Origin: Malacoraja senta | Taxonomy: Eukaryota | Length of the DNA: 64,000 bases | Direction: 5' to 3' | Assembly (NCBI GenBank): GCA_038087875.1 | Contig: CM075981.1 | Location: forward strand, 1,426,001-1,490,000 | Shown here: positions 19,224 to 38,967 of the stretch, one piece after another | How positions within the stretch are numbered: the stretch's first letter is position 1 | Layout: each line of letters opens with the position of its first letter | The notes under the pieces: model-generated | Databases searched by the model: none | The model's input: the letters and a program-made list of their open reading frames with translations, nothing else | What the model was told of the DNA's origin: nothing | Translations under genes and position numbers: made by a program

Positions 19224-19538
19224 GTGCAGTGTGGGCAAAGTGGGAAGTAAAAGGAGTTGTGGGAAGAGAGATCACAATCGATTGTCACTATGCAGCAGAG
19301 TACCGCTCACACACAAAATACTGGTGCCGTGGGAGGAGTCGACCGTGTAGAGTTTTAGTGGAAACAAATGGGCAACACGGACGGAGTGGAAGAGTGTCAA
19401 TCACAGATAACCTGGCACGAGGAATATTTACTGTGACTGTGGAGGATCTTCACTCTGAAGATACAGGATGGTACAGCTGTGGAATTACAACATCAGCCGA
19501 CCATCCAATATTTAACGTTTTACTCGAAGTATCTGACG
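19224..19538 (+). CDS. Gene 2 exon V1
   Basis: ttcag| acceptor and |gtatgt donor; 315 nt; all four Cys plus KYWC and DTGWYSC. Confidence 0.93.
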
Positions 19539-19840
19539 GTATGTTTCGCAGCGAATGACTTGACGTCTCCAGCAGAAAGACAATACAGGATTACAATCGA
19601 TCCTCTTACAGTGCATAGATACATGAAAAGGAAATTACGTTTAGTGTAAGGCGAATCCAGCAAAGTCCGATCAAGGGTAGTCCGAGGGTCATCAAAGAGA
19701 TAGATAGTTCTGCACTGCTCTCTGGATGTGGTAGGATGATTCAGATGCCTGACAAGAGCTGTGAAGTAATTGTCCCCGAATCTGGCGGTGTGCGTGTTCA
19801 CGCTAGTAACGCTCTCCGGTAAGGGACCTGGAGGTGGGTG

Positions 19841-20712: not shown

Positions 20713-21074
20713 TATCTATGTATGTATCTACAGTTCCTTGTGTCTCCACCTCTCATATTGAAAAGCAAGACCAATCAAAAATTGAGCAAGAGAACACTAT
20801 ACCCGTTAGAGTAACTGGGCGCAGTGGTTTCCTGATGATTGTTATCGGGTGTTACATTTGTATTTGAAGTGAACCCTACTGATGTTAACGACTCACGAAT
20901 AGATTTATGTTCTGTTGAGATAAGGAAATAAAAGACAATTAAAGATTGACAAAAAAATGCTGGATTAACTCAGCGAGACAGGCTGCATCCCTGGAGAGAA
21001 GGAATGGGTAACGTTTCTGGTCTGAGCATGGGTCTCGACCCGAAACGTCAGAGCGAGAGAGTTAGATGGAGCTC

Positions 21075-21215
21075 TAAAAGATAGCGGCGCTATGGGATAT
21101 GGTGAGAAGGTAGGAACGGGGTACTGATTGTGGATGATCAGCCATGATCATAGTGAATGTCGGTGCTGGCTCGAAGGGCCGAATGGCCTACTCCTACACC
21201 TATTGTCTCTTATTT
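21075..21215 (+). mobile_element. CR1 extreme 3' end
   Basis: ggatgatcagccatgatc and ggctcgaagggccgaatggcctactcc motifs. Confidence 0.75.
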
Positions 21216-21725
21216 CTTTACCCGCTTTATTATAATCCGTCCGTCCTCTGTTCTCAGTCAGGGCTATGTAAAAGCAGTGGCGGCGGTGAATGCCTAAACA
21301 CGGGTCCGGCCCAGTGTCGGTTGAGAGATGAATGTTGGCAGCGTAGCCGGCGGCACCGCCAATGAAATAGCAAAGTGAGGTATTTCTGCAGGGTGAGAGG
21401 CCGGGCACCGCCTGGGATTGTTGAAAGGCAGCTCCTGCAACACTGCCGCGCTCCCTCAGTACCGCACTGCGATCCCAGCCCAGTTTCTGCTCAGGGATCT
21501 GGAGTAGGAAGTGAACCCTAATTGTACTGACCAGGGGACAGAACACTGACACAACAGGTACAATTACAGCACTGCCTGCACTTCACACCGGAGACATTGG
21601 CCGTGAAGCAATATGACACATCATGGAACGATTTAAGTTTTCTTGCATGTTTTCTTCAAAATGTATCTATTTCCATTAAACAGTTCATTTGTTCTCCATC
21701 TGAAAGTTTCTCCCCTCCATTTCAG

Positions 21726-22003
21726 CCGCAGTGTGGGGAGAGACGTATGTAAGTGGAGTTGTGGGAACCGCTCACACACAAAATACTGGTGCCGTGTGCA
21801 GAATCGCCAATGTACAGATATGGTGGAAACAAATGGGCAACACGGACGGAGTGGAAGAATGTCAAGCACAGATAACCCGGCACGAGGAATATTTACTTTG
21901 ACTGTGGAGGAACTTCACTCTGGAGATACAGGATGGTACAGGTGTGGAGTTACAACATCTAAAGGCCGTCCAATGTTAAACGTAGTACTCCAAGTATCTG
22001 ACG
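21726..22003 (+). pseudogene. Gene 2 exon V2, inactivated
   Basis: 278 nt versus 315 nt in gene 3: a 37-nt deletion removes the B-strand Cys and shifts the frame; donor is GCACGT versus GTACGT. Confidence 0.9.
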
Positions 22004-22745
22004 GCACGTTTCTCAGCGATTGACTTGTCGTCTCCACTGAAAAGCCTGATCTATGTTTTCTCCGGGAAGGGTCAGGGCAGCACCGATATCCCGAGGCTCC
22101 GCAGCAGTGCAGAGACCTGCGGGGAGCGGGCGGGGGTCGGGAAACCGCACTCATTTTGCTCTCACCCTGTGCGGGCTCTGCCCCACTGAGCGGCCACCCA
22201 CTGAGAAACATAGAAACATAGAAAATAGGTGCAGGAGGAGGCCATTCGGCCTTTCGAGCCAGCACCGCCATTCATTGCGATCATGGCTGATGGTCCCCTA
22301 TCAATAACCTGTGCCTGCCTTCTCCCCAAAACCCTTGATTCCTTTTTTTTTTTTAATAATTTTTTTAATAGAAGTACGGTAGATTACAGTAATGTACAAC
22401 ACGTATATATTAATACATTTTTTGTACCGCTTCACTTTTTTAAACTTTAAGAAAGAAAAAGAAAGAAGTAAGAAAAGTGAAGAAAGTGCGCAAAGGTTGT
22501 GAAGTGCAAAAGAGTGTTGGGAAAAGAAAGCCCCTTAGAAAAGAAGTTAGAGAAGGAAGTAAAGTTAGAAAATAGACCCTAGAAAAGAAAGAGAAAGAAA
22601 GAAGGAACAATCGCTCTATTATAACTCTTATAACATACTTCATAGAGAAGGAACTACCAACCAAGTCTGTTTTTGTTTTACCTCCCATTACCAGGTCCAG
22701 ATACCTTTTATTTATTTATTTGTTTTTCTAAATTACTATTGCACC

Positions 22746-25700
22746 TCATGCTTGTAATAGGTCCAAAAACGTAGACCACGTCTTTTGAAATTGGTCTACT
22801 TTGCCTACTAGGAGGAATCTCATCTCTTCCAGATGTAATGTTTCCAACATATTTGATGTCCACATTTTTATTGTTGGTGTGGGCGCATTTTTCCAGAATT
22901 TAAGTATAAGCTTTTTTCCCATTATTAGCCCATAATTGAGTAAATTCTTCTGATACACGTTTAATTCAGGAATACCTTCCGATATTCCAAAAATAATCCA
23001 TTCTGGTTTTGGTACCAGTTTTATTTTGATTAATTTTGAAAAAATATCAAATATTTCAAACCAGAATTTTTGGATTTTTGTACAAAAAACAAAAGAATGT
23101 GCTATGGTAGCTTCTTGACATATACATTTATCACAGATTGGTGAGACGTTAGGAAAGATTTTATTTAGTTTGGTTTTTGAATAATATAATCTATGTAATG
23201 TTTTAAATTGGATAAGCGTATGTCGTACGTTGATCGAGCATTTATGCACCTGTAATAAATGATTATCCCAACTCTCTTTTGAAATTTTTATACCTAGATC
23301 TTGTTCCCAATCTCTTCTAATTCCATCTGTTGTGGGTATTTCTATGTTTAAGATGATATTATATAAGTATGATATTAAATTAACTGATTCCGCCTTTGTC
23401 TTCATTGCTTCATCTAGTAAGTCGGAAGGCATATTATAATAATCTTTTGTGTGTGTTTTCAAATAGTCACAGATTTGTAGATATTTAAAATATTGATTAT
23501 TTTTCAAATTATATTTCAGTTGTAGTTGTTGGAATGATAGTAATTTTTCTAATTCATACAGATCTTCGAGCGTTTTGATTCCCATTCTTTCCCATTGTAT
23601 AAATGCTTTATCTATGATTGAAGGTTTAAACGATGGGTTATTGACTATTGGTATTAAGAGAGATAGGTTTCTTAATTTTAGATTCTGTTTTATTTGCTTC
23701 CATGTTCTAATAGTGCTATATATAATTGGATTTTTATTATAATTTTTATTATTCAAATTTATTGGAGAGAGAATAATCGCTCCTATATTATTCGGGGAGC
23801 AATCCCCTTTTTCCATTATAATCCAGTCCACCTGCTGGGCAGAATTGTCCAGCAGGTGAATCATATTTTTAATATTTACTGCCCAGTTATAATACATAAA
23901 GTTAGGGAGCGCTAGACCCCCCAACTCTTTTCGTTTGTTAAGGTGTGTTCTTTGTATTCTGTGGGATTTGTAATCCCATATAAAATTTGTAATGTCTGAG
24001 TCCAGTTTTTTGAAAAACTTTTTTGGGAGATATATAGGTATTGATTGAAATAGGTAAAGGATTTGTGGTAAGAAAATCATTTTTATAGCATTTATCCTAC
24101 CTATTAAGGACATCGGAAGTGTTTTCCAAAATTTAATCAAATTATTTAATTTCTTAAGTAGGGGATTATAATTAGCTTTAAACATATCATGGTAATTTCT
24201 AGTGATCTCAATTCCTAAATATTTGAATTTTTCCATAGCTATTTTAAAAGGGAATTTCCTGAGATGTGTTGAGTCTTTTGGTTTAATCGACATAATTTCA
24301 CTTTTGTTCCAATTTATTCTATATCCTGAAAAGGATCCAAAGTCCTCAATTAAGTTTAATATATTTGGTATACTAATTTGTGGTTTTGTGATGTACAGTA
24401 GTACATCATCAGCATATAGGGATAGTTTGTTGTTTGAATATTTTGTGTTATAACCGTGAATATTCGAGTGTGTTCTTATTTTTTCAGCAAGGGGTTCAAT
24501 TACCAAAGCAAATAACAGCGGTGATAGTGAACATCCTTGTCTGTTGCCCCTAGATAATTCGAATTTTGAAGATAATATATTATTAGTTAGTATTCTAGCC
24601 GTAGGTTTGTTATATAGTAGTTTTATCCATGCAATAAAGTTTTCTCCCAATTGGAATTTTTGCAATACTTTGATCATATAGTCCCATTCTACTTGATCAA
24701 ACGCTTTTTCTGCGTCCAGTGAGATGATAGCTAACTCTTGGTCATAAGATTTATGTGAATGCATTATGTTAAGCAAACGTCTCAAATTATTAAATGAGTG
24801 TCTCTTAGGTATAAATCCTGTTTGATCCTCATGTATTAGTCTACTAACATACTTGCTTAATCTATTGGCTAATGTTTTTGCTATTATTTTCTGATCCGTA
24901 TTTAACAAAGCAATAGCTCTATATGATCCTGGTTCTTCTATATTTTTATCTTTTTTAAGTATTAATATGATCGTTGATTCCGCTAGTGTTTCAGGTAGGT
25001 TTTGCTCTTTATAAGCATATGTATACATTTTTTGTAATCGTGGAGTAACTATATCATAAAAAGATTTATAAAATTCATTACTGAATCCGTCTGGTCCTGG
25101 TGTTTTTCCATTTTTTAGTGTTTTTATTGTGTCTTCTATCTCCTTAGAAGTAATTTGTGCTCCCAGTTCCTCTTGTTCCCTGCGTTCTAATTGTGGTAGA
25201 TTACAATTATCTAAAAATTCTGAGATTTTATTATTGTCTATTGACGTTTTAGATGTGTATAGATTCTGGTAAAATTGAGCAAATCTTTTATTAATATCCT
25301 TGGGTAGTGTTAATACTTCCCCTCTATCTGATTTAATCTTTAATATTGCATTCTCTTTTTCCCGTTTTTTAAGTTGTCGTGCTAGAAGTTTGTGGGGTTT
25401 GTCCCCGAATTCGAAGTGTTCTTGTTTTGTGATTTGAAATAATGTTATAACTTTCTCTGACAGTAATTTATTTAACTGAAATTTCAGTAGTAGTATTTTA
25501 TTATGTTTATCCATAGTTGGGTCTTTAGCATTATCTATATCTAACTGTTTTATTTGATCTTCTAAGTGTCTTTGTTCATTCTTATTCTTTTTATTTTGAT
25601 AAGCTTGAAATGAAATAATGACTCCTCTTATAAATGCTTTGAAGGATTCCCATAATAACGTGGGGGATATCTCTGGTGTATCATTTAACTCAAAAAATAG

Positions 25701-26537
25701 ATCCATCTGTTTTTTTAGATAGATACTCCCTTGAGGGTCTTTTAAAATGTGTGAGTTAAACCTCCAGAACGGTTTATTCATAGACATTCCTTCTAGTTTT
25801 AGAACAAAAGTTAACGGAGAATGATCTGAGATCGCATTAATATGATATTTAGGATTCAAAGATTGCGGAATTAATTTTGTATCCACAAGAAAATAGTCTA
25901 TCCGTGAATATGTTTTATGCACCATTGAATAAAACGAGTAATCCCTTCCCGTCGGGTTTGCAATCCTCCATACATCTGTTATATTTGTGTTTTCCATATA
26001 TGTGTGCAATAGTTCACTGGTTTTAGATTTCGTCTGACCTTTTTGTTTTTGCATCGATTTATCTAAATAAGGATCTAAAACACAATTAAAATCTCCTCCG
26101 ATTATAACATTTTGATAATTAGATTCTGCAATTATATTCAGAATTTTATTAAAAAATTGAGGGTTATCAAAGTTGGGCGCATATATGTTTACCAGCGTAA
26201 TTGGCATATTATTGATCTCCCCTGCTACTATAAGATATCTCCCTTCCTTATCTAAAATAGTGTTCTTTGATTTAAATGGAATTCCTTTACGAATAATAAT
26301 TGCAGTACCTCTAGATTTGGAGGTAAATGAAGAGTGAAATGTTTGGCCTATCCAGTTCGCCCTCAGTCTTGTCTGATCTTGCTGTTTAAGATGTGTTTCC
26401 TGTAGAAACGCAATGTCCGTGTTGTATGATTTCAACTGAGCTAGTATCTTGCCCCTTTTAATAGGTTCATTAATCCCCCTTATATTCCAACTACATAATG
26501 TGATTCCTCCTATTTTCTTTTGATTGTCGTCATGCAT
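22746..26537 (-). CDS. L1 ORF2p (APE endonuclease, RT, CCHC), 1263 aa
   Basis: SWNIRG, FLQETH, GGDFN, SDH; GNRQGCSLSP, YADD; CDKC..H..C; uninterrupted. Confidence 0.97.
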   Translation of the reverse strand: MHDDNQKKIGGITLCSWNIRGINEPIKRGKILAQLKSYNTDIAFLQETHLKQQDQTRLRANWIGQTFHSSFTSKSRGTAIIIRKGIPFKSKNTILDKEGRYLIVAGEINNMPITLVNIYAPNFDNPQFFNKILNIIAESNYQNVIIGGDFNCVLDPYLDKSMQKQKGQTKSKTSELLHTYMENTNITDVWRIANPTGRDYSFYSMVHKTYSRIDYFLVDTKLIPQSLNPKYHINAISDHSPLTFVLKLEGMSMNKPFWRFNSHILKDPQGSIYLKKQMDLFFELNDTPEISPTLLWESFKAFIRGVIISFQAYQNKKNKNEQRHLEDQIKQLDIDNAKDPTMDKHNKILLLKFQLNKLLSEKVITLFQITKQEHFEFGDKPHKLLARQLKKREKENAILKIKSDRGEVLTLPKDINKRFAQFYQNLYTSKTSIDNNKISEFLDNCNLPQLERREQEELGAQITSKEIEDTIKTLKNGKTPGPDGFSNEFYKSFYDIVTPRLQKMYTYAYKEQNLPETLAESTIILILKKDKNIEEPGSYRAIALLNTDQKIIAKTLANRLSKYVSRLIHEDQTGFIPKRHSFNNLRRLLNIMHSHKSYDQELAIISLDAEKAFDQVEWDYMIKVLQKFQLGENFIAWIKLLYNKPTARILTNNILSSKFELSRGNRQGCSLSPLLFALVIEPLAEKIRTHSNIHGYNTKYSNNKLSLYADDVLLYITKPQISIPNILNLIEDFGSFSGYRINWNKSEIMSIKPKDSTHLRKFPFKIAMEKFKYLGIEITRNYHDMFKANYNPLLKKLNNLIKFWKTLPMSLIGRINAIKMIFLPQILYLFQSIPIYLPKKFFKKLDSDITNFIWDYKSHRIQRTHLNKRKELGGLALPNFMYYNWAVNIKNMIHLLDNSAQQVDWIIMEKGDCSPNNIGAIILSPINLNNKNYNKNPIIYSTIRTWKQIKQNLKLRNLSLLIPIVNNPSFKPSIIDKAFIQWERMGIKTLEDLYELEKLLSFQQLQLKYNLKNNQYFKYLQICDYLKTHTKDYYNMPSDLLDEAMKTKAESVNLISYLYNIILNIEIPTTDGIRRDWEQDLGIKISKESWDNHLLQVHKCSINVRHTLIQFKTLHRLYYSKTKLNKIFPNVSPICDKCICQEATIAHSFVFCTKIQKFWFEIFDIFSKLIKIKLVPKPEWIIFGISEGIPELNVYQKNLLNYGLIMGKKLILKFWKNAPTPTIKMWTSNMLETLHLEEMRFLLVGKVDQFQKTWSTFLDLLQA

Positions 26538-27756
26538 TTTTACCAGTTTTAATGACCTTAATTATTGTGGTGCGTTCATACCTCCGGACTCTGGTTATTT
26601 TGGGAGTATTTCTATTATAGACTTCCTTGGTAGTTCTCCTGCGCGATTGTCCTTGAAGAAAAAACACACAGATGTGACATATTGTGATTAAAAAAAAAGT
26701 ATATAAATCAAATAAATTTACGGTGTCTAAAATTTCAACACCGTAGTGAGTGGCCCACTCGTCTGTGGGGTACGACATCCATAACGCTTCCGGCGTAGTT
26801 GGTATAAAGTTAGCCCCGCTGTATTTATTACCCAAAATCTATGGGGTCATTACCGTTTCCAATTCAGTTCTATTTCACCCAGTTACAATTTATATATATG
26901 TCAAATGTATTCGATTCCATATCCTACTCACTCTTTATCTCTTAACTATTTTAAAATGAATTTAGTATTGTTAAAGTGAGCGGTTTACTGAGTGGATTAA
27001 CCGGAGTCAGGTTCCTGGAATTGTGCCAAGTGCCTGATCTCCTCTCCTCTCCACGAGCTGCGAACATATGTGATAACTGCTGTCTGCGTTATGACGCAGG
27101 CACCACAGTTTTATCAGTTTCAAATATTATTTCTATATTAGTATTGTTAATTATTAATTATGATTAATTCTCAGCATTTTGTAAAACTATATAAGCCGTA
27201 TATATTTTTCATACCAACCTCGAGTGTATATTATCTCTTAACTATTTTAAATTGGTTTTAATATTGTTAAAAATGAGCTGTTCGCTGGAAGGGTTAACGG
27301 GAGTCTGGCTCCTGGAGTTATGCCAGGTACCCGGTCTCCCCCTCCCTCCACTCTCGAGCTGCATAGCACTTGCTGTTATCTGCTAAACAGAGCAGGCTGC
27401 ACATTTTTTATCTATTACAATTGCTATTTCTATATTAGTATTGTTAATTATTAATTATTATTAGTTCTCAGTTTTTTCAGTTTTTTATAAACAATATAAG
27501 CCATGTGATGTTTTTCACTCTCAGCCCAGCAGTTCGTCCCGTGTTATCAGGTTTTCCTCGTTTGAGCACGTAGTGTCCTTGAATTACATAGCACAATGTT
27601 CCAGCGAAGATAATAATGTCTAGCCACGTCTCACTAAGAATCTGTTGCTTGAAGTCAAATAAAAAAATAAAAAATCAGTGTTCAGTTAATTCACTTTCCT
27701 TGTGATACTCATGTTGGGAGAATAAGCAAGTTCGTTTGTTCATGTCGTCTTGGTTT

Positions 27757-28752
27757 TCAATCTCCAGTTGATGCAGCCTTAGTCGCGATTTCTTGAGCGT
27801 ATTTGAGAGATTCATCCGAATTAGTGAATGTTTTTGACACTCCCTCAAAGGTAATACGCATTCTAGCCGGATAGAACACTCCACACAAAACTCCCTTAAC
27901 ACCATAAAGAACTTCTCTGGTCTGTGAGAACTTTCTTCTCTTTTGCTCAATCTCATAAGGGTAGTCCCGTAGGAGTTTAATAGTATCACCTCTGTACATC
28001 ATCTTCTCTCCGTGGTTGATTTTTTTCATCAGCGCTTCCATTGTTGAGATATCCCGAAGTTTAATTATGATCTGTCGTGGGTAGGCACGTTCTCCTTGAG
28101 ATCTTGATTTAAATCTAGGGAGTCGATGTGCTACTTCAATTACAGGTACTTCTGGTAGCTTCAGTACGTGTTTAATTAGGTTGGCAGCGAACTCACAAAC
28201 ATTGTCCCCCTCAGCTCCCTCTTTTACACCACGTATTCTTATATTTTGACGTCTTGAGCGAGCTTCTAGGTCAACACATTTATTCGAAACCTTTGTGACT
28301 TGGTTCTTGAGACTATCTATTTCTGACTTCATAGTCTGCATCTCTCCAGCCATCACTTCCACAGCAGCTTCCAAATCTTTCACTGCAGATGCATTTGCAG
28401 CCACAGTTTCGTGCACAGCCTCAAACCTCTTTATGGTCTCTTCTGCCACCTTTTCAATTTTTATCGATAATCCTTTTTCCACACCTTCAATTCTTTTTTG
28501 GAGAGCCTCAATACCCTCAAGTATTTTATCATTACCGGCCATCAATTTACTGTTCCCAGCTTCCATATCATTTTTGATATCTCTTACCGAGTTTCTTAAG
28601 TCCTCCATTTCGGCTTTCTCTTTTGCAGATCGAGTAGCCATTCCAGAGACCTCTCCAGAGGTCAGTTCTGAAGTTTCTTGCTGTTCCAGAGTCTTCAGCA
28701 GATGTTTTGAGATTTTCCTCTGTGGGCTCTGACCTGGAGATGTACTTTTCAT
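27757..28752 (-). CDS. L1 ORF1p (coiled coil and RRM/CTD), 331 aa
   Basis: Heptad-rich region, LEARSRRQNIRIRGVKEG, AHRL, YPARMRI. Confidence 0.93.
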   Translation of the reverse strand: MKSTSPGQSPQRKISKHLLKTLEQQETSELTSGEVSGMATRSAKEKAEMEDLRNSVRDIKNDMEAGNSKLMAGNDKILEGIEALQKRIEGVEKGLSIKIEKVAEETIKRFEAVHETVAANASAVKDLEAAVEVMAGEMQTMKSEIDSLKNQVTKVSNKCVDLEARSRRQNIRIRGVKEGAEGDNVCEFAANLIKHVLKLPEVPVIEVAHRLPRFKSRSQGERAYPRQIIIKLRDISTMEALMKKINHGEKMMYRGDTIKLLRDYPYEIEQKRRKFSQTREVLYGVKGVLCGVFYPARMRITFEGVSKTFTNSDESLKYAQEIATKAASTGD

Positions 28753-30559
28753 TTAAAATGACTTTCCCTCCGTTAAAATCGCGGCGCTTACTGATGACGT
28801 CATCAGCACCGCGACATGAACCTCCGGTAAGTTTTTAAAAACGGTCCCGACCTCCAGACCCGATTTTAACGCGAAAAAACGCGATTTTTTCAGCGGAGCT
28901 AAAAAATTTGCGACTGCTAGCAAAGCATGTCGCCACCGGAAGTCTGTCGCCACCGGAAGTCACCCTTGATTCCACTAGACCCTGGAGCTCTATCTGACTC
29001 TCTCTTAAATCCATCCAGTGATTTGGCCTCCACTGTCCTCTCTGGCAGGGAATGCCACAAATTCACAACTCTCTGGGTGAAAACGTTTTTTCTCACCTCA
29101 GTCTTAAATGGCCTCCCTTTATTCTAAGACTGTGGCCCCTGGTCTGGACTCGCCCAACATTGGGAACATTTTTCCTGCATCTAGCTTGTCCAGTCCTTTT
29201 ATAATGTTATGTGTTTCTATAAGATCCCCCCTCATCCTTCTAAACTCCAGTGAATACAAGCCTAGTCTTTTCAATTTTTCCTCATAAGACAGTCCCGCCA
29301 TCCCAGGGATCAATCTCGTGAACCTATGCTGCACTGCCTCAATCACAAGGATGTCCTTCCACAAATTAGGAGACCAAAACTGTACGCAGTACTCCAGCTG
29401 TGGTCTTTCCAGAGCCCTATACAACTGCAGAAGAACCTCTGTACTCCTATACTGAAATTATCTTGTTATGAAGGCCAACATTACATTAGCTTTCTTCACT
29501 GCCTGCCTTACCTGCAAGCCAACTTTCAGTGACCGGTGTACAAGGACACCCAGGTCTCGCTGCGCCTCCCCCTTACCTAACCTAACCCCGTTGTGATAAT
29601 AATCTACCCCTTGTTTTTGCCACCAAAGTGGATAACCTCACATTTATCTATATTATACTGCCACGCATCTGCCCACTCACTCAACCTGTCCTGGTCACCC
29701 TGCAACCTCCTAACATCCTCTTCACAGTTCACACTGCCATCCAGCTTTGTGTCATCCGCAAACTTGCTAGTGTTGCTCCTAATTCCCTCTTCCAAATCAT
29801 TAATATATATGGTAAACAGTTGCGGCCCAACACCGAGCCTTGCGGCACTCCATTCGCAACTGCCTGACATTCTGAAAAGGACCCGTTCACTCCTACTCTT
29901 TACTTCCTGTCTGCCAACCAATCTTCTATCCACGTCAACACCCTACCCCCAATACCATGCGCTCTAATTGTAGTCACCAGTATCCCGGGCGGGTCCTTAT
30001 CAAAGGCTTTCTGAAAGTCTATATACACTACATCCACTGGCTCCCCTTCATCCATTTTACTTGTCACATCCTCAAAAAAATCTAGAAGATTAGTCAAGCA
30101 TGGTTTTCCTTTCATAACTCCATGCTGACTTGGACTAATCCTTTTACTGCTATCCAAATGCCCCATTATTACCTCTTTAATAATTGACACCAGCATCTTT
30201 CCCACCACCGAAGTCAGGCTAACTGGTCTGTAATTCCCAGCTTTCTCTCTCGCTCCTTTTTTGAAAAGTGGAATTTAACTTCTCTTTCACTTCACTTTTC
30301 ACTTCAAGTGGAATGCTCAGCACATTTCCCTTCCTCTGAACTGTATGAAATGTCACCCTGTCAGAAGTTTGCATTCCGACTCAAAATAATAATCCGACAG
30401 ATCAGTGAGAAACAAGTGTTGCTCGCGGTCTGAATACCCCGAGAGTTTTTTAAAAATCAGTCCCCAGAGCTCAATAGACTGCGATCAGTCCTCCCGGGGT
30501 AGGCCATCCCGCTTCCCGCCCCCACCTCAGGGATCAGTCATTCCCTCCCAAACCCCGCG

Positions 30560-31560
30560 CTCTCTCTCTCTCTCCCTCTGCCCCGTCAATGCGCCCCCAT
30601 CCCCAGCAGCCACTGTCCACCCACCGCCCGGCAGTCAGCCAACCTCTCCACCCGGACATTTCCCCGGTGTTAAGCAGAATAAACTCATCTTTCACCCCAT
30701 CAGCCGTCGCACACAACACATAATCCTCCAACATTTTCGCCACCTCCAACGGGATCCCACTACTAGACACATCTTTCCATCTCCACCGCTTTCTGCTTTC
30801 CGAAGAGACCGTTCCTTTCGTAACTCCCTGGTCAACGTCCATCCCCCCCCCCCCCGAAACAAAAAACATCCTCTCCCCAATTACCTTCCACGACAACTGC
30901 AGGAGATGGATCACCTGTCTCGATACCTCCTTCCTCTACTCCGTCCAAGGTCTCCAACAATCTTTTCGGGTGAGGATTGACTAGCATCTCCTCCAAGCTC
31001 ACCTACTACATCCGCTGTTCCAGGTGTGAACTACTATATATCGGCTAGACCAAGCGCAGACTCGTCGATCGTTTCGCTGAATAACTCCGCTCAGTCTGCT
31101 TCGGCCGACGCTACTTCCCGATTGCTAAACACTTTAATTCCCCCTCCCATCCCCAAACTCAACTTTCTGTCCTGGACCTCCTCCACTATCCAACGTAAAT
31201 AGGAGGAAAAGCACCTGGGCAACTTACAACCCATCGGTTTGAATATTGACTTCTCTAACTTCAAGGAACCCTTGCTTTACTCCTGTCCCCATCCCGCCAC
31301 CATCCTAGCTCTCCAATTAGTTGCACAGTCAAACTGATTTTCTTTTAATTATTGTATGCCTCGTTGTCACCTTCCCTTCAGCTCACAATGATCCATTGTC
31401 CATTTTCTTTTCACCTTTGATCACTTGTTTTCACACCTTACCTTTCCATTTATCTTCTGTCTCCCTGTCCCATGATTCTCAGGCTGAAGATGGGTCTCGA
31501 CACGAAACGTCACACATTCCTTCTTTCGAGAGATGCTGCCTGCTCCGTTGCGTTACTCCA
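30560..31560 (+). mobile_element. Penelope-like element remnant (paralog about 57480-58460)
   Basis: FHPISRRTQHIILQHFRHLQRDPTTRHIFPSPPLSAFRRDRS and YIGxTKRRLxDRFAE motifs. Confidence 0.75.
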
Positions 31561-32699
31561 GAATTTTGTGTCTATCTTAAAGGGATCGTAATTCGTTTTC
31601 CACAGCAGAGATGGTTAAGTGTGTGTAGACATGTAATGGGGGAAATGGAACTCGGTGCATTGTGGTGATGGATCTGAAATCACACTTGAATATCTACACA
31701 ATGTTCGTAGTTTAACCACTGTTGACACATGGTCGAAATACATCCTGACGATAAATGAAAGGCTTAAAATAGCGAAGAAATTTGAAGCAGATACTGCAAG
31801 ACACCTGGACCGAAGGCGAGAGGTTCCAACGTCAGCTGTAAGTTAATTCTACACTTTTAAAATGTGTTTACCAAGGAGGTGGAAGTCAGGATTGTGGACT
31901 CATTGTGTCAGTTCAAACATTCCCAGCATTTGTCCGGCTCAACTGTGTCGCAAACCCAACAATTCCCCGGAGTCTGAGACTGAACCACTGTCCTCGCTCT
32001 ATCCACCCACCCCCAACTCTCTCTCCATCCTCTCTCGGATCCGTGGCCCAGTCGTGCTGAATTGTCCAGGGCGAGCCGGGGTCATTGGGAATAAAACCTG
32101 TCCCAGATGAGCAGCGGGACATTGGGCTCACAATTCAGTTTAGTTTATTGTCACGAGTACCGACGTACAGTGAATCTGGCGGTGTGCGTTTTCACGCTAG
32201 TAACGCTCTCCAGTAAGGACCCGCTTTATTGTAACCCGTCCGTACTCAGTCAGGGGGTTGTAAAGGCAGTGGTTGCGGTGAATTTCTAAACACGGGTCCG
32301 GCCCAGTGTCGGTTGAGAGATGAATGTTGGCAGCGCCGAAACTGAAATAGCAAAATGGGGTCTTTCTGAAGGGAATAGGCCGGGTATCGCCTGGGATTGT
32401 TGATAGGCAGCTCCTGCAACACTGCCGCGCTCCCTCAGTGCCGCACTGCAATCCCAGCCCAGTTTCTGCTGAGGGATCTGGAGTGAGAAGTGAACCCAAA
32501 TTGTACTGACCGGGGGGTAGAACACTGACTCAACTGATACAATAACAGCACTGCCGCACTTCATACCGGATACATTGGTCGTGAAGCAATATGACACATC
32601 ATGGAACGATTATGTTTTTCATGTAATCTTCAAAATGTATCTATTACCATTAAACAGTTCATTTGCTCTCCATCTGAAAGTTTTTCCCCTCCATTTCAG

Positions 32700-33014
32700 C
32701 TGCAGTATGGGGAGAGAGGAATGTAACAGGTGTTGTGGGAAGAGCGATCACAATCGATTGTCACTATGCAGCAGATTACCGCTCAAACACAAAATACTGG
32801 TGCCGTGGGTGGAGTCGCCAATGTACAGATATGGTGGAAACAAATGGGCAACACGGACGGAGTGGAAGAGTGTCAATCACAGATATATCGGCACTAAGAA
32901 TATTTACTGTGACTGTGGAAGATCTTCACTCTGGAGATACAGGATGGTACAGGTGTGGAACCACAGCATCCACCGAACATCCATTGTTTCCCGTACATCT
33001 CCAAGTATCTGACG
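32700..33014 (+). CDS. Gene 2 exon V3
   Basis: ttcag| acceptor and |gtacgt donor; 315 nt open; canonical Cys and Trp. Confidence 0.93.
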
Positions 33015-33399
33015 GTACGTTTCGCAGCGATTGCCTTAATGTCTCCACTGAAAAGCCTGATCCATGTTTTCTCCGGGAAGGGTCAGGGCAGCACCGATAT
33101 CTCGAGGCTCCGCAGCAGTGCAGAGGCCTGCGGGGAGCGGGCGAGGGTCTGGAAACCCCACTCATGTTTGCTCTCACCCAGTGCGGGCTCTGTCCCATTG
33201 AGCGGCCACCCACTTCAAGACACTCAACACATTTCCCTGCCTCTGAATTGTATGAAATATCACCCTGTCAGAGGTTTGCATTCCGACTCAAACTAATAAT
33301 CCGACAGATCAGTGAGAAACAAGTGTTGCTCGCCGTCTGAATACCCGCAGATTCATAAACAGGGAATCAGTCCCCAGAGCTCCACAGACTGCGTTCAGT

Positions 33400-34490
33400 C
33401 CTCCCGGGGCAGCCAGCCCGCTTCCCGCCCCCACCTCAGGAATCAGTCACCCCGTCCGCACCCCGCGCACGCTCTCTCTCTCCCTCTGCCCAGTCAATGC
33501 GCCCCCACTACCAGCAGCCATTGTCCACCCACCGCCCGGCAGCCAGCCAGCTTCTCCTCCCGGACATTTCCCCGTTCGTAAGCAGAATAAACTCATCTTT
33601 CGCCCCATCAGCCGTCGCACACAGCATATATTCCTCCGACATTTGCGCCACCTACAACGGGATGCCACAACTAGTCACATCTTTCCATCTCCATCGCTTT
33701 TTGCGTTCCCTCCGCAACTCCCTGGTCAACTCGTCCCCCCCCCCTTCCCCCCGTCCCCAGGTACCTTCCCCTACAACTGCAGGAGATGCAACACCAGTCA
33801 CTATATATCCCCCCCTTTACTCCGTCCATGGGCCTCAACAGTTTTTTCGGGTGAGGCAGAGGTTCACTTGCATCTCCTCTAACCTCATCTACTCTATCCG
33901 CTGTTCCAGATGTGAACAAGCGGATATAGTAGATGGGAGACCAAGCGCAGACTCGGCGATCGTTACGCTGAACAACTCCGCTCAGTCTGCCTCGGCCTAC
34001 GCTACATCCCGATTGCTAAACACTTTTATTCCCCCTCCCATTCCCAAACTGATCTTTCCGTCCTGGACCTCCTCCAGTGTCAGAGTGAGGCCGAAGGCAA
34101 ATTGGAAAAACAGCGCCTCATATTTCGCTTGGGCAGCTTACAACCCAGCGGTTTGAATATTGACATCTCGAACTTCAAGTAACCCTTGCTTTACTCCTTT
34201 CCATCCCGCCCCCATCCGAAACCTCCAATTAGATTCACCTTATAATATTTTACTGATTGTATGCCTCGTTGTCACCTTCCCTTCAGCTGACAATGATTCA
34301 TTCTACATTTCCCTTTAACATTGTCACCTTTGATCACTTGTTTTAACATCTTACCCTTCCATTTCTCTTCTGTCACGCAGAACATGACTGTCAGGCTGGA
34401 GAAGGGTCTCGATCCGAAACTTCACGCACTCCTTCTCTCGAGAGATGCAGCCTGCTCCGCTGAGTTCCCCCAGCATTTTGTGTCTCTCTT
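33400..34490 (+). mobile_element. Penelope-like element remnant (paralog about 60300-61030, with internal deletion)
   Basis: VRQRFTCISSNLIYSIRCSRC GIY-YIG region; CRRCNT zinc knuckle. Confidence 0.75.
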
Positions 34491-35427
34491 AAAGCGATCG
34501 TAATTAGTTTTCGCGATTAAATTACAAGGCATTGAATTGTGTTTTTGGCACGCTTGTCTTCATCAGTGAGAACATTCAGAATATAATTTGAGATAATATG
34601 CTTCAGACGTGCAGATGTTCAGTCCACACTTTGGGAATTGTGTTCAGCTTCAATCACTCAGCTCCAAGAAAAGTTGAGATGGACAGCGAGCAGAAAGGTT
34701 TAAGGGCGACGTTGCCTGGACAGGATGGGATTGACGCAGGGAGCGATTGGACAAACTCAGACTTCATTCCTTAGTGTGGAAATGATTGAGAGAGGAACTT
34801 ATAGAAATGTAACAATCACGAGAAGCATGTTCATTTTCCCACGATGTGTGGAATCAAAAAGTGGAGGACAGAGGTAATGGGAACTATTTAAAGAGGAAGG
34901 AATAGTAAGGTGCAATTGACCGTAATTGCATGTTTTGTACAGCTGAGTGGCGGAAGCTGAACACAATTCGCACAAGTTCGACCTCAACAACATATGTACA
35001 ACTGAAACATAACATCCAACATATGTTCTGAGGGACAACATTTTCCACACATTGGGTAATATGTACATGGAACCTGCTGCCAGGGGAAGTTGTTGAGGCA
35101 GTTAGAATAGCAGCGTTTAAAATAAATTTTGGATATTTGCGTAGATTGGGATCATTGCGAGTGATAAATGAGAAACGCGGACATATGGAAATGTCATAGA
35201 AAGACATGTTGGTCGGCATTAATGAGCTGTTGTGATGGGCATCTTTCGGTTCTCTATAACTCTAACCTTCTTCGGTTTCTGCGCTTCGCACACTCCCAGA
35301 GATGTAGAGGAGCCGGTGAGGTATCAACCGGACGGCTCGGGCTGAGATAAAGTGCTGCTGAGATTTAGCAAGTGTTTGGTTTTTAACAATTCATACAGGT
35401 GACTGAATATTTGCTCCATTCCCACAG

Positions 35428-35747
35428 AAACCATGTCTGCTCCTGTGCTCAGTTATCTGTCAGCAGCAAATTCCTCACGTCTTGGAGGCTCAGTGTCATT
35501 GTCCTGTGAGTCTCTCCGTGGATCCCTTCCCATCCATTACACATGGTTTGAGAAAACGAGCATTGGGTTTCTACGATCTTGAAAGGCAATCAACTGGATC
35601 TGAGTTGTGAAATCCTCAGAGGTGAACACCTTCGATATTACTGCACAGCCGCAAATAATCGTGAGACAAAATCCAGTGAAATAGTCAAGGTGAAAGTCTT
35701 CAAAGGAGCAGGAACGTGCAGTTATGTGACAGAAATGAACAGTGCAG
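35428..35747 (+). pseudogene. Gene 2 exon C2a, frameshifted
   Basis: 320 nt versus 321 nt in paralogs; 1-nt deletion after WFEK gives TGA at 35580; splice sites intact. Confidence 0.9.
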
Positions 35748-36109
35748 GTGAGTGTTCCTCTCGTGTCCCTGAACCTGCTGCTATTCACCTTGTGGTGATG
35801 TTCATGGATTTCTTGTTATTTGCAGACGGCATCATTGCAGCCACCGTGAGCTCATGGTGTAAAATGCGAGAGTTTGTTTGGGGGACTGGCAAATAATTGC
35901 CCGTTGCTTCCACCATGGAGGTGTTGAGCAATTTCAGCAAAGGAGAGAAAGACATGCACTTGTCACAAAGGGTTGAGTGCACTCCATCAAATGTCTGCCT
36001 TCTGCCTTAAAAATGCCGCTTGGCTGCCGCTTAAGGTCTCACAGTCACTTTGAGACATTGAAAGCAACCAAATGCATCCTGTTTGGATCCGCCATCATTT
36101 ACAATCAAG

Positions 36110-36575
36110 GATGTGAGACCAAGCGGAGGCTTGGCGATCGTTTCGTCGAACACCTCCGGTCGGTCCGCAATAACCAACCTGAACTCCCGGTGGCTCAGCA
36201 CTTCAACTCCCCCTCCCATTCCGTATCTGACCTCTCTGTCCTGGGTCTCCTCCATGGCCACAGCGAGCAACACCGTAAATTGGAGGAAATGCACCTCATA
36301 TTCCGCTTGGGCAGTCTACATCCTGGTGGCCTGAACGTTGAATTCTCCCAATTCTGCAAGCCCTGGCTGTCTCCTCCCCTTCATCAGCCATCTGGTTGTC
36401 TCCTCCCCTCCCCCAGCCCTCGGGCTCCTCCTCCGCCTTTTCCTTTTTTCCTTTGTTCTCCCCACCCCCTATCAGTCTGAAGAAGGGTTTCGGCCCGAAA
36501 CGTTACCTATTTCCTTCGCTCCATAGATGCAGCTGCACCCGCTGAGTTTCTCCAGCATTTTTGTGTACCTATGTA
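36110..36575 (+). mobile_element. Penelope-like 3' fragment shared by genes 2 and 3 (paralog about 62660-63120), absent from gene 1
   Basis: ETKRRLGDRFVEHLRSV..HFNSPSH..RKLEEMHLIFRLGSLHPGGLNVEFS. Confidence 0.85.
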
Positions 36576-36812
36576 CAATTTCATGATCATGTTCATGATT
36601 TTAACTCTGTTAATTTGTGTGAATCACTGGAATTCCAGTAATCTCACAAAATTTAGGTGGAGTCACTTGGCCGTCACTCCATCAAGTATAACCCTTACTT
36701 TTGTCAAAGATAATTTTGAAATGAACTCCCAGTAGGCGTGGAGACGTTCAGATTGGAAGTCCAGAATAGAGTGTGAATGGTTTACATCAGAGACACCAAG
36801 CTTATACAATGC

Positions 36813-37049
36813 CAGCGTTTCTTAAACTATTTCAGTGCCATTAACCCTTGAGTCTTTATTACAAGATTTAATTCACCCTCCACAAAATATTCTTATGTTT
36901 TTTTGGTTATTATCATCTTATTTTCACGTGTGCATAATTTTATATATAATTTATTTTGTCACATGAGCAAAAAACATGAATTAACTCATTCACCCCAAAA
37001 TAATTTCATTCGCCCTTGGGTAAACCATTCATCAGTTTAAGAAGCACTG
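36813..37049. mobile_element. hAT-like MITE, 237 bp (paralog 63352-63588)
   Basis: Imperfect TIRs cagcgtttcttaaact and agtttaagaagcactg; AT-rich core; absent from gene 1; no clear TSD. Confidence 0.6.
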
Positions 37050-37466
37050 GCCGAGGCTACAATTTCGCCGAACACTTGTGTTTGGTCTGTCATGACCCAG
37101 AGTCGTACTTGATAGACACCCCGTTGATGCAGAGCAGCAGCAGTTTGCACCATCTGCACGATGCACTGCAGCAACTCACCAAGACTCCCAAGACATTACC
37201 TTCCAATTGCAACAGGCTCCGTGTTCAATGCATCATTATTCACCATTCACACCCACATTGGCTGGGAAGCGCTTTGGAACGATGTGCAGATGGTGAGGGA
37301 CGGTGTACAGTATCTGTCTCTCATCGCAATCTAGGTGGAATTCAACAGAGTTAAGAAAATCATTGGGCGGACTCCCCTGTATATATTGATGTATACTATA
37401 ATGTATATGTTTGTGAAAGACTAATTTTGCTCTTCAATCTATGAAAGAATTTTCCTTCAGTTTCAG

Positions 37467-37778
37467 GTGCACTGTGGGCAGAGAGCGAAGTACGAGGGTT
37501 TGTGGGAAGAGCGATCTCAATCGATTGTCACTATGCAGCAGTGTACCGCTCACACACAAAATGCAGGTGCCCTGGGACAAGTCGCCAATGTACACATATA
37601 GTGGAAACAAATGGGAAACATGGACAGAGCGGAAGAGTGTCAATCACAGATAACCCGGCACGAGGAATATTTACTGTGACTGTGGAGGATCTTCACTCTG
37701 GAGTTACAGGATGGTACAGATGTGGAATTATTACACCTGGCGAACCAACATTTAAAGTACATCTCCAAGTATCTGAAG
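37467..37778 (+). CDS. Gene 2 exon V4 (open, but core Trp lost)
   Basis: 312 nt, splice sites intact; KCRC instead of KYWC, VTGWY instead of DTGWY. Confidence 0.85.
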
Positions 37779-38967
37779 GTAGGTTTCTCAGTGAGTGACT
37801 TCATGTCTCGACTTTGGCATCTGCATAAAACATTTGTTGGGTCACATATGGGAGCCTGGTGCACAGTTCTGGTCGCCGCTTTATAAAACAAAAGATGTGA
37901 AAGGTTTGGAGAGGTTACAGAAAAATGTCACCGGGATATTTAGTTGTAGGTTACAAATGCAACATGGAAATGGATCCTTCGGCCCACCGAGTCCACACCG
38001 ACTAGCAATCACCGGTCACACTAGTTCTATGTTATTCCACTTTCCCATTCGCTCCCTACACATAATTCTACAATACCGCCATTCACACACCTCATTAGTG
38101 CAACATTATCACTATCAACAATTGTATACAAGGAAATTTAAAAGTTGTTGATAATGATACTGTTGCACTAATGAAGTGTTTGAATGTTGGTATTTTAGAA
38201 TTGTGGCAGAGTTTCAGATTAAAAGAAGATTAACTGCAGATGCTGGAAATATAAAACAAAGACAGATGGTGCTGCTGTGTGTTGGTGCAGTGGCAGACAT
38301 GGTAGTTCTGCCAGCTGGGTGGATGGAGAGACACAGAGATGTTCAAATCTGTTAAATTGTGAGGAGAAGGTACAGGGAAGACTTACAAGGATGTTGCGAT
38401 GACTTGACACTCAGGGAGGGATTGAGCAGATTAGGACTTTATTTCTTGGAGCGCAGGAGGATGAGGGATGATCTTATGGCAGGTAAAAAATCATGCGAGG
38501 AATAGATCGAGTTAATACACAGCCTTTTGCTCAGAGTAGGGAAATCGAGAACCGGAGGACATGGTTTTAATATGAGGGGGGAATGATTTAACAGGAACCT
38601 GGGGAGTAACGTTTTTACACAAAGGTTGGTAGGCACATGAAACGAACTGCCAACAGAAGTAGTTATGGCAGGTACTATCGTAACATTTAATAAAATATTG
38701 GACATGTACATGAATATGATATGTTTAGTGGGTTAAGGGCCAAGAAAGGGCAGGTGGAACTAGTGTACATTGGGCGTGTTGGTCAGCACGGGCAAGTTAG
38801 ACCGAAGAGCCTGTTTCTATGTTGTATGACTCTATGATTCTATGTAGATGGATGGGTCAGATTCCAAAATGGCGGCTCTGGCTAAGATACAGAGATGGTG
38901 GATATTGGTGAGTGTTTGATTTTCAGATGTTCACTCAGTTGTCTGACTGTTTGCTCCTTTCCCACAG

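Follow-up and report, generated by a model that had tools for sequence, protein, structure and literature searches.

A mosaic island of divergence around the third V exon of tandem skate MDIR genes

Tandem MDIR genes and the lesions of gene 2

The window, by which we mean the whole stretch of 64,000 nucleotides analysed here, carries tandem skate genes of the modular domain immune-type receptor (MDIR) family, whose relatives are annotated as 'polymeric immunoglobulin receptor-like' or "pIgR-like" and whose V domains are of the CD300/pIgR type. It contains tandem repeats about 27 kb long with 96-98% identity, and a run of N at positions 9630-10012. Using tblastn, we mapped the exons in the order leader, V1, V2, V3, C2, V4, and C2, which we read as the MDIR exon order, followed by a predicted TM segment. 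The V domains of the window match MDIR3, MDIR5, and MDIR2, as well as 'pIgR-like' genes of Amblyraja, Leucoraja, and Rhinoraja. The V4 domain has 87% amino acid identity with an MDIR3 domain, and V1 has 89-90% with an A. radiata domain. Since the nearest relatives of these genes are MDIR or elasmobranch 'pIgR-like' proteins, and since they are built as modular strings of V and C2 domains, we assign them to the MDIR family.

Genes 2 and 3 are around 98% identical across their common backbone. When the window is compared with itself by BLAST, positions 21769-22342 match 55295-55868 and positions 28963-33401 match 55858-60301, the homology being broken exactly at a large insertion in the V2-V3 intron that is present in gene 2 only (Table 1). 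Gene 3 is apparently intact within the window, and its V4 and later exons lie beyond the window end. The V2 exon of gene 2 differs from that of gene 3 at 10 of 278 nucleotides and has, in addition, an internal deletion that takes out the region of the first canonical Cys and shifts the frame. The C2-type exon between V3 and V4 is frameshifted to a stop codon in gene 2 and is intact in genes 1 and 3. Given these two coding lesions and the intron insertion, gene 2 is probably a pseudogene as judged from its sequence; if it is disabled, its share of the changes described below need not be adaptive.

Table 1. Positions in the window of the features discussed in the text
Feature	Positions	Strand	Description
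V2 exon, gene 2	21726-22003	+	37-nt internal deletion after 21766; aligned with the gene-3 V2 exon, 55215-55529
Insertion in V2-V3 intron, gene 2 only	22343-28961	.	6.6 kb; homology between genes 2 and 3 broken exactly there (self-BLAST)
High-copy interspersed repeat	32083-32174	.	adjoins the 5' edge of the island; word depth ~8e5, loose ends at 32134 and 32174 in four read runs
Divergence island, genes 2 and 3	32187-32996 (gene 3: 59079-59898)	+	8.0% vs 2.1% background; likelihood scan and sliding profile
Intron patch, gene 2 alone diverged	32357-32590	+	20 gene-2-specific, 4 gene-3-specific, and 7 Amblyraja-specific sites (genes 2 and 3 aligned together with A. radiata L001)
Background-level block inside the island	32591-32699	+	3/109 = 2.8%; holds polypyrimidine tract and acceptor; indel common to both V3 units
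V3 exon, gene 2	32700-33014	+	V-set, CD300/pIgR type, 315 nt; frame starts at third base, open throughout (translation, Pfam, AlphaFold2, Foldseek)
Exon cluster 1	32707-32811	+	12 differences; A' strand, BC loop (CDR1-like), C-C' turn
Exon cluster 2	32953-32996	+	11 differences in 44 nt; F-strand end, FG loop (CDR3-like), G-strand start
C2-type Ig exon, gene 2, between V3 and V4	35428-35746	+	1-nt deletion near 35554 leading to in-frame TGA at 35580-35582
V3 exon, gene 3 (comparison partner)	59602-59916	+	open frame

Both copies of V3 match the Pfam V-set profile PF07686 better than its curated cut-off (E=2.7e-11 for gene 2 and 1.1e-12 for gene 3). They carry the C20, W33, and C85 core together with an extra Cys pair, C34/C41, that flanks the C-C' turn (KYWCRG...QC). 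The Cys-Trp-Cys core and the extra pair are nearly invariant in an alignment of 25 sequences. The AlphaFold2 model of V3 has a pLDDT of 91.8, and its best fold matches by Foldseek are to CD300lf (TM 0.90-0.92), with a TM of 0.82 to domain 1 of pIgR. In the PDB, phmmer matched the sequence best to pIgR, at E=4e-47 across repeated domains, and to CD300lf/CLM-1, at E=6e-17. The V domains of these proteins (PDB 7jg2, 1xed, 5ffl, 6c6q, and 6e47) have the canonical Cys/Trp core and the extra Cys pair in common with skate V3, whose variable residues sit in the equivalent BC, C-C', and FG loops, although their identity with the skate V domains is just 30-39%. The architecture also differs, since the skate gene has three successive V domains followed by C2 domains, whereas CD300 has one V domain and mammalian pIgR has five V-like domains. 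In pIgR domain 1 and CD300lf, the BC, C-C', and FG loops are the CDR-like loops that make contact with the ligand.

A mosaic island around the V3 exon

We aligned globally the two copies of the duplicated block (28963-37462 and 55858-64000) and scanned the alignment with a two-breakpoint likelihood model, using 100 shuffles of the sites as reference. This revealed one sharply bounded segment that departs from its flanks: mismatches amount to 65/810 inside this island and to 155/7314 outside (LLR of 33.9; the shuffles reached at most 9.3). The island is a mosaic, with successive blocks diverging by 10.7%, 2.8%, 9.2%, 2.5%, and 17.2%. It has three diverged parts, one intron patch and two exon clusters, which are set apart by blocks at background level, the second of them at positions 32831-32950. 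The disabling lesions of gene 2, this three-patch structure, and the presence of exon changes in both copies are observations that go beyond the earlier note on this DNA.

That note, made by manual count, had described an exon diverged in its CDR-like loops, a more diverged intron in the 500 bp or so upstream, a nearly identical intron downstream, and a sharp contrast with V1. Our measurements agree, with one refinement. The upstream intron differs at 39 of 513 positions (7.6%). The refinement is that divergence is not uniform along the island, given its two background-level blocks. The divergence drops to background directly after the exon. The V1 exons, 19224-19538 in gene 2 and 53670-53984 in gene 3, differ at a single nucleotide of 315. 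The recount of the V3 exon gave the same 26 differences in 315 nucleotides and the same 17 residue differences, over 104 complete codons rather than the 105 given before, and the four purely synonymous codons are numbers 2, 10, 15, and 60. The motif differences were all found, i.e., DYRSNT/EFRSQA, W/Q at residue 37, and RCGTTASTEHPLFPVH/SCGITAPADHSMFNVY. The clustering is strong: of the 31 residues in structurally defined loops, 13 differ, whereas the framework has 4 differences among 73 residues (Fisher p=1.8e-5).

The 5' edge of the island adjoins a repeat (Table 1). Directly past this repeat, at 32172-32176, begins a homology block common to the V1 and V2 units (18668-19578 matches 32172-33053 in the self-BLAST), and the island falls within this V1-unit block. 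The match between the edge of the island and the edge of homology is imperfect, because homology with the V1 region also runs upstream, where positions 31596-32061 correspond to 17938-18400 with only ~3% divergence.

In the AlphaFold2 model, the variable residues 25, 26, 29, and 30 belong to the BC loop, residue 37 lies in the C-C' loop, and residues 90-92 and 94 are part of the FG loop. Derived, mostly non-synonymous exon changes are present on both branches: 10 in gene 2 (8 non-synonymous and 2 synonymous) and 14 in gene 3 (11 and 3), of which 7 and 10, respectively, fall in loops. Among these 24 polarised changes, 15 are unique to one copy and resemble new point substitutions rather than copied states; up to 9 derived states are also found in V1, V2, or V4.

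Over the whole V3 exon, dN (0.088) and dS (0.089) are similar by the NG86 method, and their ratio (0.98-0.99) is thus not above 1 for the domain. When the exon is partitioned, dN/dS is 2.24 in the loops (16 non-synonymous and 2 synonymous changes) and 0.30 in the framework, in a partition drawn after the differences had been seen and with a synonymous total of just 6. With this same post hoc partition and its small counts, pN in the loops (0.22) exceeds both the rate of the island intron (p=4e-4) and the pS of the exon (p=0.036). Replacement in the loops proceeds at 8-12 times the backbone rate per branch. Neutral sites are themselves raised around 4-fold in the island, with a pS of 0.084 in the exon and a divergence of 0.076 in the intron for a background of 0.021 (p=0.004 for exon vs background). 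The V3 orthologs of Amblyraja and Leucoraja have a dN/dS of 0.25 overall and of 0.28 in the loops, which are conserved between these skates.

The intron patch and the search for a donor

The intron patch is diverged in gene 2 alone. A relative-rate (Tajima-type) test that takes the V3 unit of A. radiata as outgroup gives p=0.0015, and the Poisson probability of at least 20 changes, when 2.5 are expected from the backbone, is 3e-12. Outside the patch, the branches of genes 2 and 3 are symmetric. The gene-2 branch amounts to 8.6% in the patch and 3.2% in the exon, for about 1% per branch in the backbone. Within the patch, the gene-3 unit differs from its A. radiata ortholog by 4.7% and from the gene-2 unit by 10.3%. 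The phylogenetic signal is discordant, since the gene-3 unit groups there with the A. radiata ortholog and not with gene 2. Quartet sites backing the pair of genes 2 and 3 are 0/3 in the patch vs 21/25 elsewhere, and the heterogeneity of the triplet with the Amblyraja ortholog is significant (Fisher p=2e-5). Decay of CpG or an AID-like signature was rejected as an account of the patch, where most changes are off CpG and transitions and transversions are mixed, as read from the list of sites. The gene-2 patch was found in contigs of public reads, exactly in a 159-nt contig of run X1 (32451-32609) and with 3 mismatches in a 302-nt contig of run X2 (32307-32609).

The patch lies in a region that is otherwise well conserved. 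An intron element of ~230-340 bp precedes most of the V1-, V2-, and V3-type exons compared, and the ~230-bp region of the patch is 91-96% identical to the gene-3 unit in paralogs of three species. Between gene 3 and Amblyraja, the upstream intron is better conserved than the V3 exon itself. This element had no match in Rfam, and its pairing showed no covariation, with a single compensatory pair among 69 and a covariation term of +1.41.

We searched for a donor by comparing both V3 units with 8 V units of the window and with 13 V-unit matches in the A. radiata (L001) and L. erinacea (L002) clusters; for 10 of these units, the comparison of the patch went down to individual sites. Sixteen patch states of gene 2 are unique among these 10 homologous units of three skate species, and the gene-2-specific states occur in 0/9 of the other units. 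The best identity to the patch was 90% in the window and the 146 kb of the A. radiata and L. erinacea clusters, and no donor was found there. The gene-3 unit differs by only 5% from the intron that precedes V2 in gene 2, which raised the idea that it had been converted from a V2-type intron. This idea was rejected, because the gene-3 unit is equally close to the A. radiata V3 ortholog and to other units of both outgroup species, so that it represents the usual state and gene 2 the outlier. Recombination detection, which had been proposed as a check on conversion, gave a non-significant PHI test (p=0.79) on 8 V units, taken as exon plus short flanks with 86 informative sites. The short read contigs, which are dominated by repeats and paralogs and have rare variants dropped, yielded no donor, no usable polymorphism, and no RNA evidence.

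Origin of the island and comparison with known systems

The V3 island is a composite that cannot have been produced by point mutation along one tree. Patchy interlocus conversion combined with loop-focused replacement fits it best, and we hold this explanation with moderate confidence. Gene 2 alone would have had its ~230-bp intron patch replaced, or rewritten in some other way, most likely by a short interlocus gene-conversion tract coming from a diverged V unit outside the window. In both copies, the BC loop, the C-C' turn, and the FG loop collected substitutions that for the most part alter the residue, under a framework that stayed constrained. Their rate, several-fold over the local neutral rate, would reflect diversification of the loops after duplication, for which positive selection, a loosening of constraint, or small patches converted from further V units may be responsible. 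The intervening blocks, with shared derived indels and background divergence, look as if short tracts had been exchanged or homogenised piecemeal. The earlier note had offered a conversion tract, diversifying selection, or both. Its idea of a non-uniform history stands, given the change-points, the triplet, and the quartets, whereas no donor was found among the units compared and the PHI test was not significant; a selective component in the loops is suggestive only.

The duplication might also be old. Genes 2 and 3, or their V3 units, would then have separated at a dS-based age roughly two thirds that of the split from Amblyraja, and large conversion or unequal crossing-over events would have homogenised most of the gene, except for a V3 unit that escaped, possibly through selection for two different binding domains. 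We regard this as unlikely, if credible. It would account for a synonymous divergence in the exon that is high relative to the backbone, for 0.12-0.13 to A. radiata, for the roughly symmetric exon changes, for the nearly identical V1 exons, and for background-level blocks in the island that, with their shared indels, resemble small homogenised patches. However, it predicts symmetric branches where the intron patch shows 20 vs 4 changes, and its dS is based on 6 differences. As it needs gene conversion too, it differs from patchy conversion with loop replacement in direction and timing, not in mechanism.

One may further imagine a recent tandem duplication after which adaptation made the CDR-like loops diverge in both copies, ~8-12 times as fast as local neutral change, while the intron element serves as a homology anchor or regulatory element for the exchange or modular use of V-exon units; the rewritten copy of gene 2 would then be a unit dropped from exchange. 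This scenario seems to us quite doubtful.

Pure diversifying selection on the ligand-binding domain after a recent duplication, without sequence exchange, is improbable. The excess of replacement in the loops, their position at sites that bind ligand in pIgR domain 1 and CD300lf, their conservation in the orthologs of two other skates, and the uniqueness of most derived exon states to one copy all speak for it. Yet selection cannot raise the divergence of introns and synonymous sites, and is therefore contradicted as sole cause by the ~510 bp of diverged intron, by the 4-fold raised pS of the exon, and by the intron excess on the gene-2 branch. The whole-exon dN/dS of 0.99 and the disabling lesions of gene 2 also argue against it, and the option of selection alone in the earlier note has to be given up.

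Neutral change in a dead gene 2, by pseudogene decay or by a local mutation burst such as one error-prone repair event, has equally little probability in our view. The lesions of gene 2 and a ratio of non-synonymous to synonymous changes on its branch (8:2) equal to the neutral expectation are in line with it, and a mutation burst keeps some weight because the patch states of gene 2 have no donor among the units compared. However, neutral decay is limited to the backbone level of ~1% per branch, far below what is seen in the gene-2 patch and exon; gene 3, which is apparently intact, changed more in the exon than gene 2; and the mutational spectrum of the patch has no obvious signature. Finally, an assembly artefact, either a V3 unit from a different paralog misjoined to the backbone of gene 2 or a patch made of sequencing errors, is very improbable: the long, nearly identical tandem repeats, the high-copy repeat at the island edge, and a base at 32776 not seen in the contigs of X1 and X2 would favour it, but the patch exists in reads, a chimera requires two switch points in 900 bp, and the island blocks have derived indels in common with the gene-3 unit.

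MDIRs are the relatives of CD300, pIgR, and TREM in cartilaginous fish, and how they generate a binding repertoire is little understood. The family of the clearnose skate, Rostroraja (Raja) eglanteria, is like the genes studied here in being made of modular strings of CD300/pIgR-type V and C2 domains. MDIRs form a cluster of many genes, of which some are activating and others inhibitory (PMC3031540). In the literature on the family we found nothing about exon-unit mosaics between tandem copies. The published description of MDIRs, a 2006 paper in Immunogenetics, reportedly stays at the level of cDNA and family, as does its citation in PMC3031540. The present locus provides a clean, dated example, with a backbone at 2%, a V3 unit at 8%, and loop-focused replacement in both copies. 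It also highlights a conserved intron element preceding most of the V exons compared, and the flagging of gene 2 as a probable pseudogene is relevant to annotation.

In the paired CD300A and CD300C of primates, which belong to a V-domain family related to the skate genes, neighbouring genes undergo interlocus gene conversion in their ectodomain exon, and the activating partner repeatedly turns into a pseudogene (PMC12447643). In that pair, the ectodomains are held similar by conversion and the remainder diverges, whereas in the skate genes it is the backbone that is similar and the V exon unit that has diverged, with no donor found among the units compared. Another comparison is with the KIR, LILR, NITR, and MHC multigene families. 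These show patchwork (micro)conversion with tracts of 50-300 bp, raised replacement in loops, and pseudogene neighbours as possible reservoirs of sequence. The skate genes are like them in being tandem immune-receptor paralogs with putative short tracts, loop replacement, and a probable pseudogene as neighbour, but donors and polymorphism data exist for those families, whereas the skate island is described from the window, short read contigs, and the comparison with outgroups. The V3 island thus represents the patchwork that is usual in such families after gene copying, together with rapid change of binding loops, a well-known phenomenon. It offers raw material for asking if, in the oldest jawed vertebrates, innate germline receptors owe their diversity to exon-unit conversion and selection on the loops, like KIR, LILR, and CD300 in mammals.

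Gene organisation and the state of gene 2

Self-comparison of the window identified eight related 315-nt exons and a tandem segmental duplication that aligns in two blocks (see table). Each of the seven exons without an internal deletion encodes a 104-residue V-set domain, read from the third base, with a KYWCRG...QC motif. Searched exhaustively with HMMER and twice by word index, these domains fell among elasmobranch proteins annotated "polymeric immunoglobulin receptor-like" or "CMRF35-like", and the matches included the clearnose-skate Modular Domain Immune-type Receptors (MDIR) MDIR2, MDIR3, and MDIR5. MDIRs are a multigene set of activating and inhibitory skate receptors related to CD300, TREM, FCAR, and pIgR (PMC3031540). 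Mapping skate proteins onto the window gave the exon order leader, V1, V2, V3, C2, V4, C2. The window is skate DNA, and its identity to Amblyraja radiata is about 90% in introns and 95% in the V4 exon. The AlphaFold2 model of V3 (pLDDT 91.8) superposes on CD300lf (TM 0.90-0.92) and on pIgR D1 (0.82), and the sequence alignment with pIgR D1 runs through the CDR1- and CDR3-like segments.

Every exon of gene 3 within the window is open. In the V2 exon of gene 2, a 37-nt deletion after 21766 removes the region of the first canonical Cys and shifts the frame. The C2-type Ig exon of gene 2 appears to carry a 1-nt deletion near 35554, followed by an in-frame TGA (35580-35582), at a place where the exon is intact and open in genes 1 and 3. 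A 6.6-kb insertion lies in the V2-V3 intron, exactly at the break of homology with gene 3, and V4 has KCRCPG instead of KYWCRG, so that the invariant Trp is missing. Given these lesions, gene 2 is probably a pseudogene. Other structural differences were also noted. Gene 2 retains roughly 1 kb of V1-V2 intron (20651-21650) that is missing from gene 3. Gene 2, but not gene 3, contains an insertion of ~351 bp (33402-33752), whose 3' part together with the next 150 bp is a high-copy repeat; contigs of runs X1 and X2, from the same organism as the window, join 33397 to 33753. V4 of gene 1 has WYNFG instead of WYRCG and lacks the second canonical Cys; it differs from V4 of gene 2 at 26/315 nt, as many as the V3 pair.

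Positions of exons, duplicated blocks, island segments, and intron elements
Feature	Position	Remarks
Segmental duplication, first block	28963-33401 = 55858-60301	96.2% identity
Segmental duplication, second block	33753-37462 = 60298-64000	97.7% identity
Gene 1 (3' part only in window), C2	about 5556-5875	
Gene 1, V4	7276-7590	
Gene 2, V1	19224-19538	skate protein mapping
Gene 2, V2	21726-22003	skate protein mapping
Gene 2, V3	32700-33014	skate protein mapping
Gene 2, C2	35428-35746	skate protein mapping
Gene 2, V4	37467-37781	skate protein mapping
Gene 3, V1	from 53670	
Gene 3, V2	from 55215	
Gene 3, V3	from 59602	
Gene 3, C2	about 61964-62293	V4 just past window end
Island block	32176-32243	7.4% gene 2-gene 3
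Island block	32244-32356	5.3%; 12-nt deletion common to both V3 units
Intron patch	32357-32590	10.7%
Island block	32591-32699	2.8%; indel common to both V3 units
Exon cluster 1	32700-32830	9.2%
Island block	32831-32950	2.5%
Exon cluster 2	32951-33014	17.2%
V3-type unit, A. radiata (L001)	59302-60338	
V3-type unit, Leucoraja erinacea (L002)	14979-15990	
Conserved intron element, window	32260-32699; 18760-19223; 21270-21725; 59160-59601	
Conserved intron element, L001	59454-59823; 77977-78351	
Conserved intron element, L002	11241-11620; 15104-15475; 33442-33830	

An island of divergence around V3

An earlier note, made from the sequence alone, held that the third V exons of genes 2 and 3 (V3g2 and V3g3) differ at 26/315 nt and 17 residues, with 4 codons changed only synonymously. 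We reproduced these counts and found the motifs it quoted. Its description of the surroundings was equally accurate: divergence is 7.6% in the intron portion of the island, falls to background within about 20 nt past the exon end, and contrasts with V1, where 1/315 positions differ. V2 differs at 10/278 positions, plus the deletion. We aligned the two gene blocks globally and scanned the alignment by likelihood for two breakpoints, which placed the island at 32187-32996 of gene 2, with 65/810 mismatches (8.0%) vs 155/7314 (2.1%) elsewhere and a change-point LLR of 33.9 (shuffle maximum 9.3). Divergence is uneven from block to block within it.

The island falls within a block of homology between the V3 and V1 units (32172-33053 = 18668-19578). 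This block directly follows an interspersed repeat of very high copy number (32083-32174; word depth near 8e5, with loose ends at 32134 and 32174). The edge must be read with caution, as more V3/V1 homology upstream of the repeat (31596-32061 = 17938-18400) differs between the genes by only about 3%. Segments 31474-31578 and 32134-32174 form the two halves of an interspersed repeat with very high copy number, whose word depth is about 8e5 in four runs covering three organisms. Most contigs join them directly; here they are about 555 bp apart, in gene 2 and gene 3 alike. Smaller intronic peaks of gene 2-gene 3 divergence away from exons (29959-30158, 30759-30958, 36545-36744; 4.5-6% per 200 nt) could represent additional short patches of exchange or be related to repeats.

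The intron patch and its outgroups

In the MDIR clusters of A. radiata (95 kb) and L. erinacea (51 kb), a single V3-type unit each could be aligned, together with its intron, along about 1 kb. When patch sites were polarised by A. radiata, 20 were specific to gene 2, 4 to gene 3, and 7 to Amblyraja, an asymmetry between the genes that is significant (p=0.0015); 3' of the V3 exon, changes are symmetric (5 vs 5). The gene 2 count far exceeds the 2.5 expected at the rate of the backbone, i.e. the alignment outside the island (P=3e-12), and the ratio of gene 2-specific to outgroup-specific sites differs between the patch and the remaining alignment (p=2e-5). V3g3 differs from V3g2 by 10.3% over the patch and from its Amblyraja ortholog by 4.7%. 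Ten units (four of the window, two of Amblyraja, and four of Leucoraja) were aligned; within the patch, 16 states are private to V3g2, vs 2-9 to each of the other units. Among the four window units, no patch site unites V3g2 with V3g3, vs 21/25 informative sites elsewhere. Together, the polarised counts, the private V3g2 states, and the lack of uniting sites indicate that the intron portion of the island is essentially one tract rewritten in gene 2.

X1 and X2 consist of short contigs in which repeats and paralogs predominate; they yielded no evidence on polymorphism, a donor, or expression. Since they include one contig of 159 nt identical to 32451-32609 and another of 302 nt with 3 mismatches over 32307-32609, the gene 2 form of the patch is real sequence. 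No run established as RNA contains the V3 exon: the search for RNA runs and the search over all kinds gave the same runs, of unstated kind. Among the V1-, V2-, and V3-type exons compared, most have a conserved intron element on their 5' side; the gene 3 V2 unit has lost the greater part of it. In V3g3, the ~230-bp patch has 91-96% identity with six homologous units of two other skate species; relative to Amblyraja, its upstream intron is 4.7% diverged and its V3 exon 9.5%. The element has no Rfam match and no covariation support for a structured RNA.

Exon changes and the origin of the island

Polarised by both outgroups, the V3 exon has 10 derived changes in gene 2 (8 nonsynonymous, 2 synonymous; 7 in loops) and 14 in gene 3 (11 and 3; 10 in loops), with 2 further sites ambiguous. 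Of these 24 derived states, 9 are shared with a V1, V2, or V4 exon of the window, and the remaining 15 are seen in no other place. Nei-Gojobori estimates give dN 0.088 and dS 0.089 for the whole exon (ratio 0.99). In the loops (BC 21-32, C-C' 36-40, FG/G 86-99), pN is 0.220 and pS 0.098 (ratio 2.24), under a partition drawn from conserved Cys/Trp positions but set after the differences were known; the framework ratio is 0.30. The AlphaFold2 model independently assigns residues 23-30, 36-41, and 88-94 to predicted BC, C-C', and FG loops. Comparison of the Amblyraja and Leucoraja V3 orthologs gives a ratio of 0.25 for the whole exon and 0.28 for the loops. Between genes 2 and 3, loop pN is higher than the island intron rate (p=4e-4) and the exon synonymous rate (p=0.036), and the 6 and 9 loop replacements per branch are an 8-12 fold excess over the 0.77 expected at the backbone rate. 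The Trp of DTGWY, conserved in the family, both window V3 copies included, is replaced by Arg (TGRYICG) in the V3-type domains of A. radiata (L001 59824-60138) and L. erinacea (L002 about 15476-15790).

We lean, with modest confidence, towards a composite origin: a conversion tract for the patch, and deeper coalescence with loop replacement in the exon. The patch would most likely be a tract that gene 2 received from a diverged V unit outside the sampled set. In the exon, deeper coalescence would reflect either an old V3 pair with homogenised surroundings or copied-in segments, and loops would have been replaced rapidly; the data suggest that both routes contribute. It is unlikely that the whole island is an old V3 pair whose flanks have since been homogenised. 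Selection on the protein alone is improbable: the loops show an excess of replacements, but selection has no means of raising intron and synonymous divergence, and exon pS is four times background (6/71 vs 155/7296, p=0.004). We give equally little credence to pseudogene decay or a mutation burst in gene 2, as decay is bounded by the backbone rate. An assembly chimera is very improbable, requiring two switches in 900 bp and leaving the derived indels common with V3g3 unexpected. Since selection, decay, and chimera each fail, short segments with a locally different history point to interlocus gene conversion, as in tandem multigene families. The main weaknesses of the conversion reading are that no donor for the gene 2-specific patch states was found in the ten-unit alignment of three skate species and that the PHI test on the V units of the window was not significant (p=0.79). 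Of the earlier note's reading (conversion, diversifying selection, or both), the locally different history is supported and a selection component is suggested by the loop excess; selection alone is not supported, nor does the whole-exon ratio favour it.

KIR, LILR, NITR, and MHC are classical cases of patchwork conversion accompanied by loop diversification. We found no study of MDIR evolution at the genomic scale in the searchable literature. In primate CD300, conversion takes place between adjacent paralogs, and activating partners become pseudogenes (PMC12447643). The V3 island would be a case of this already known phenomenon, conversion patchwork and loop diversification, now in MDIR.
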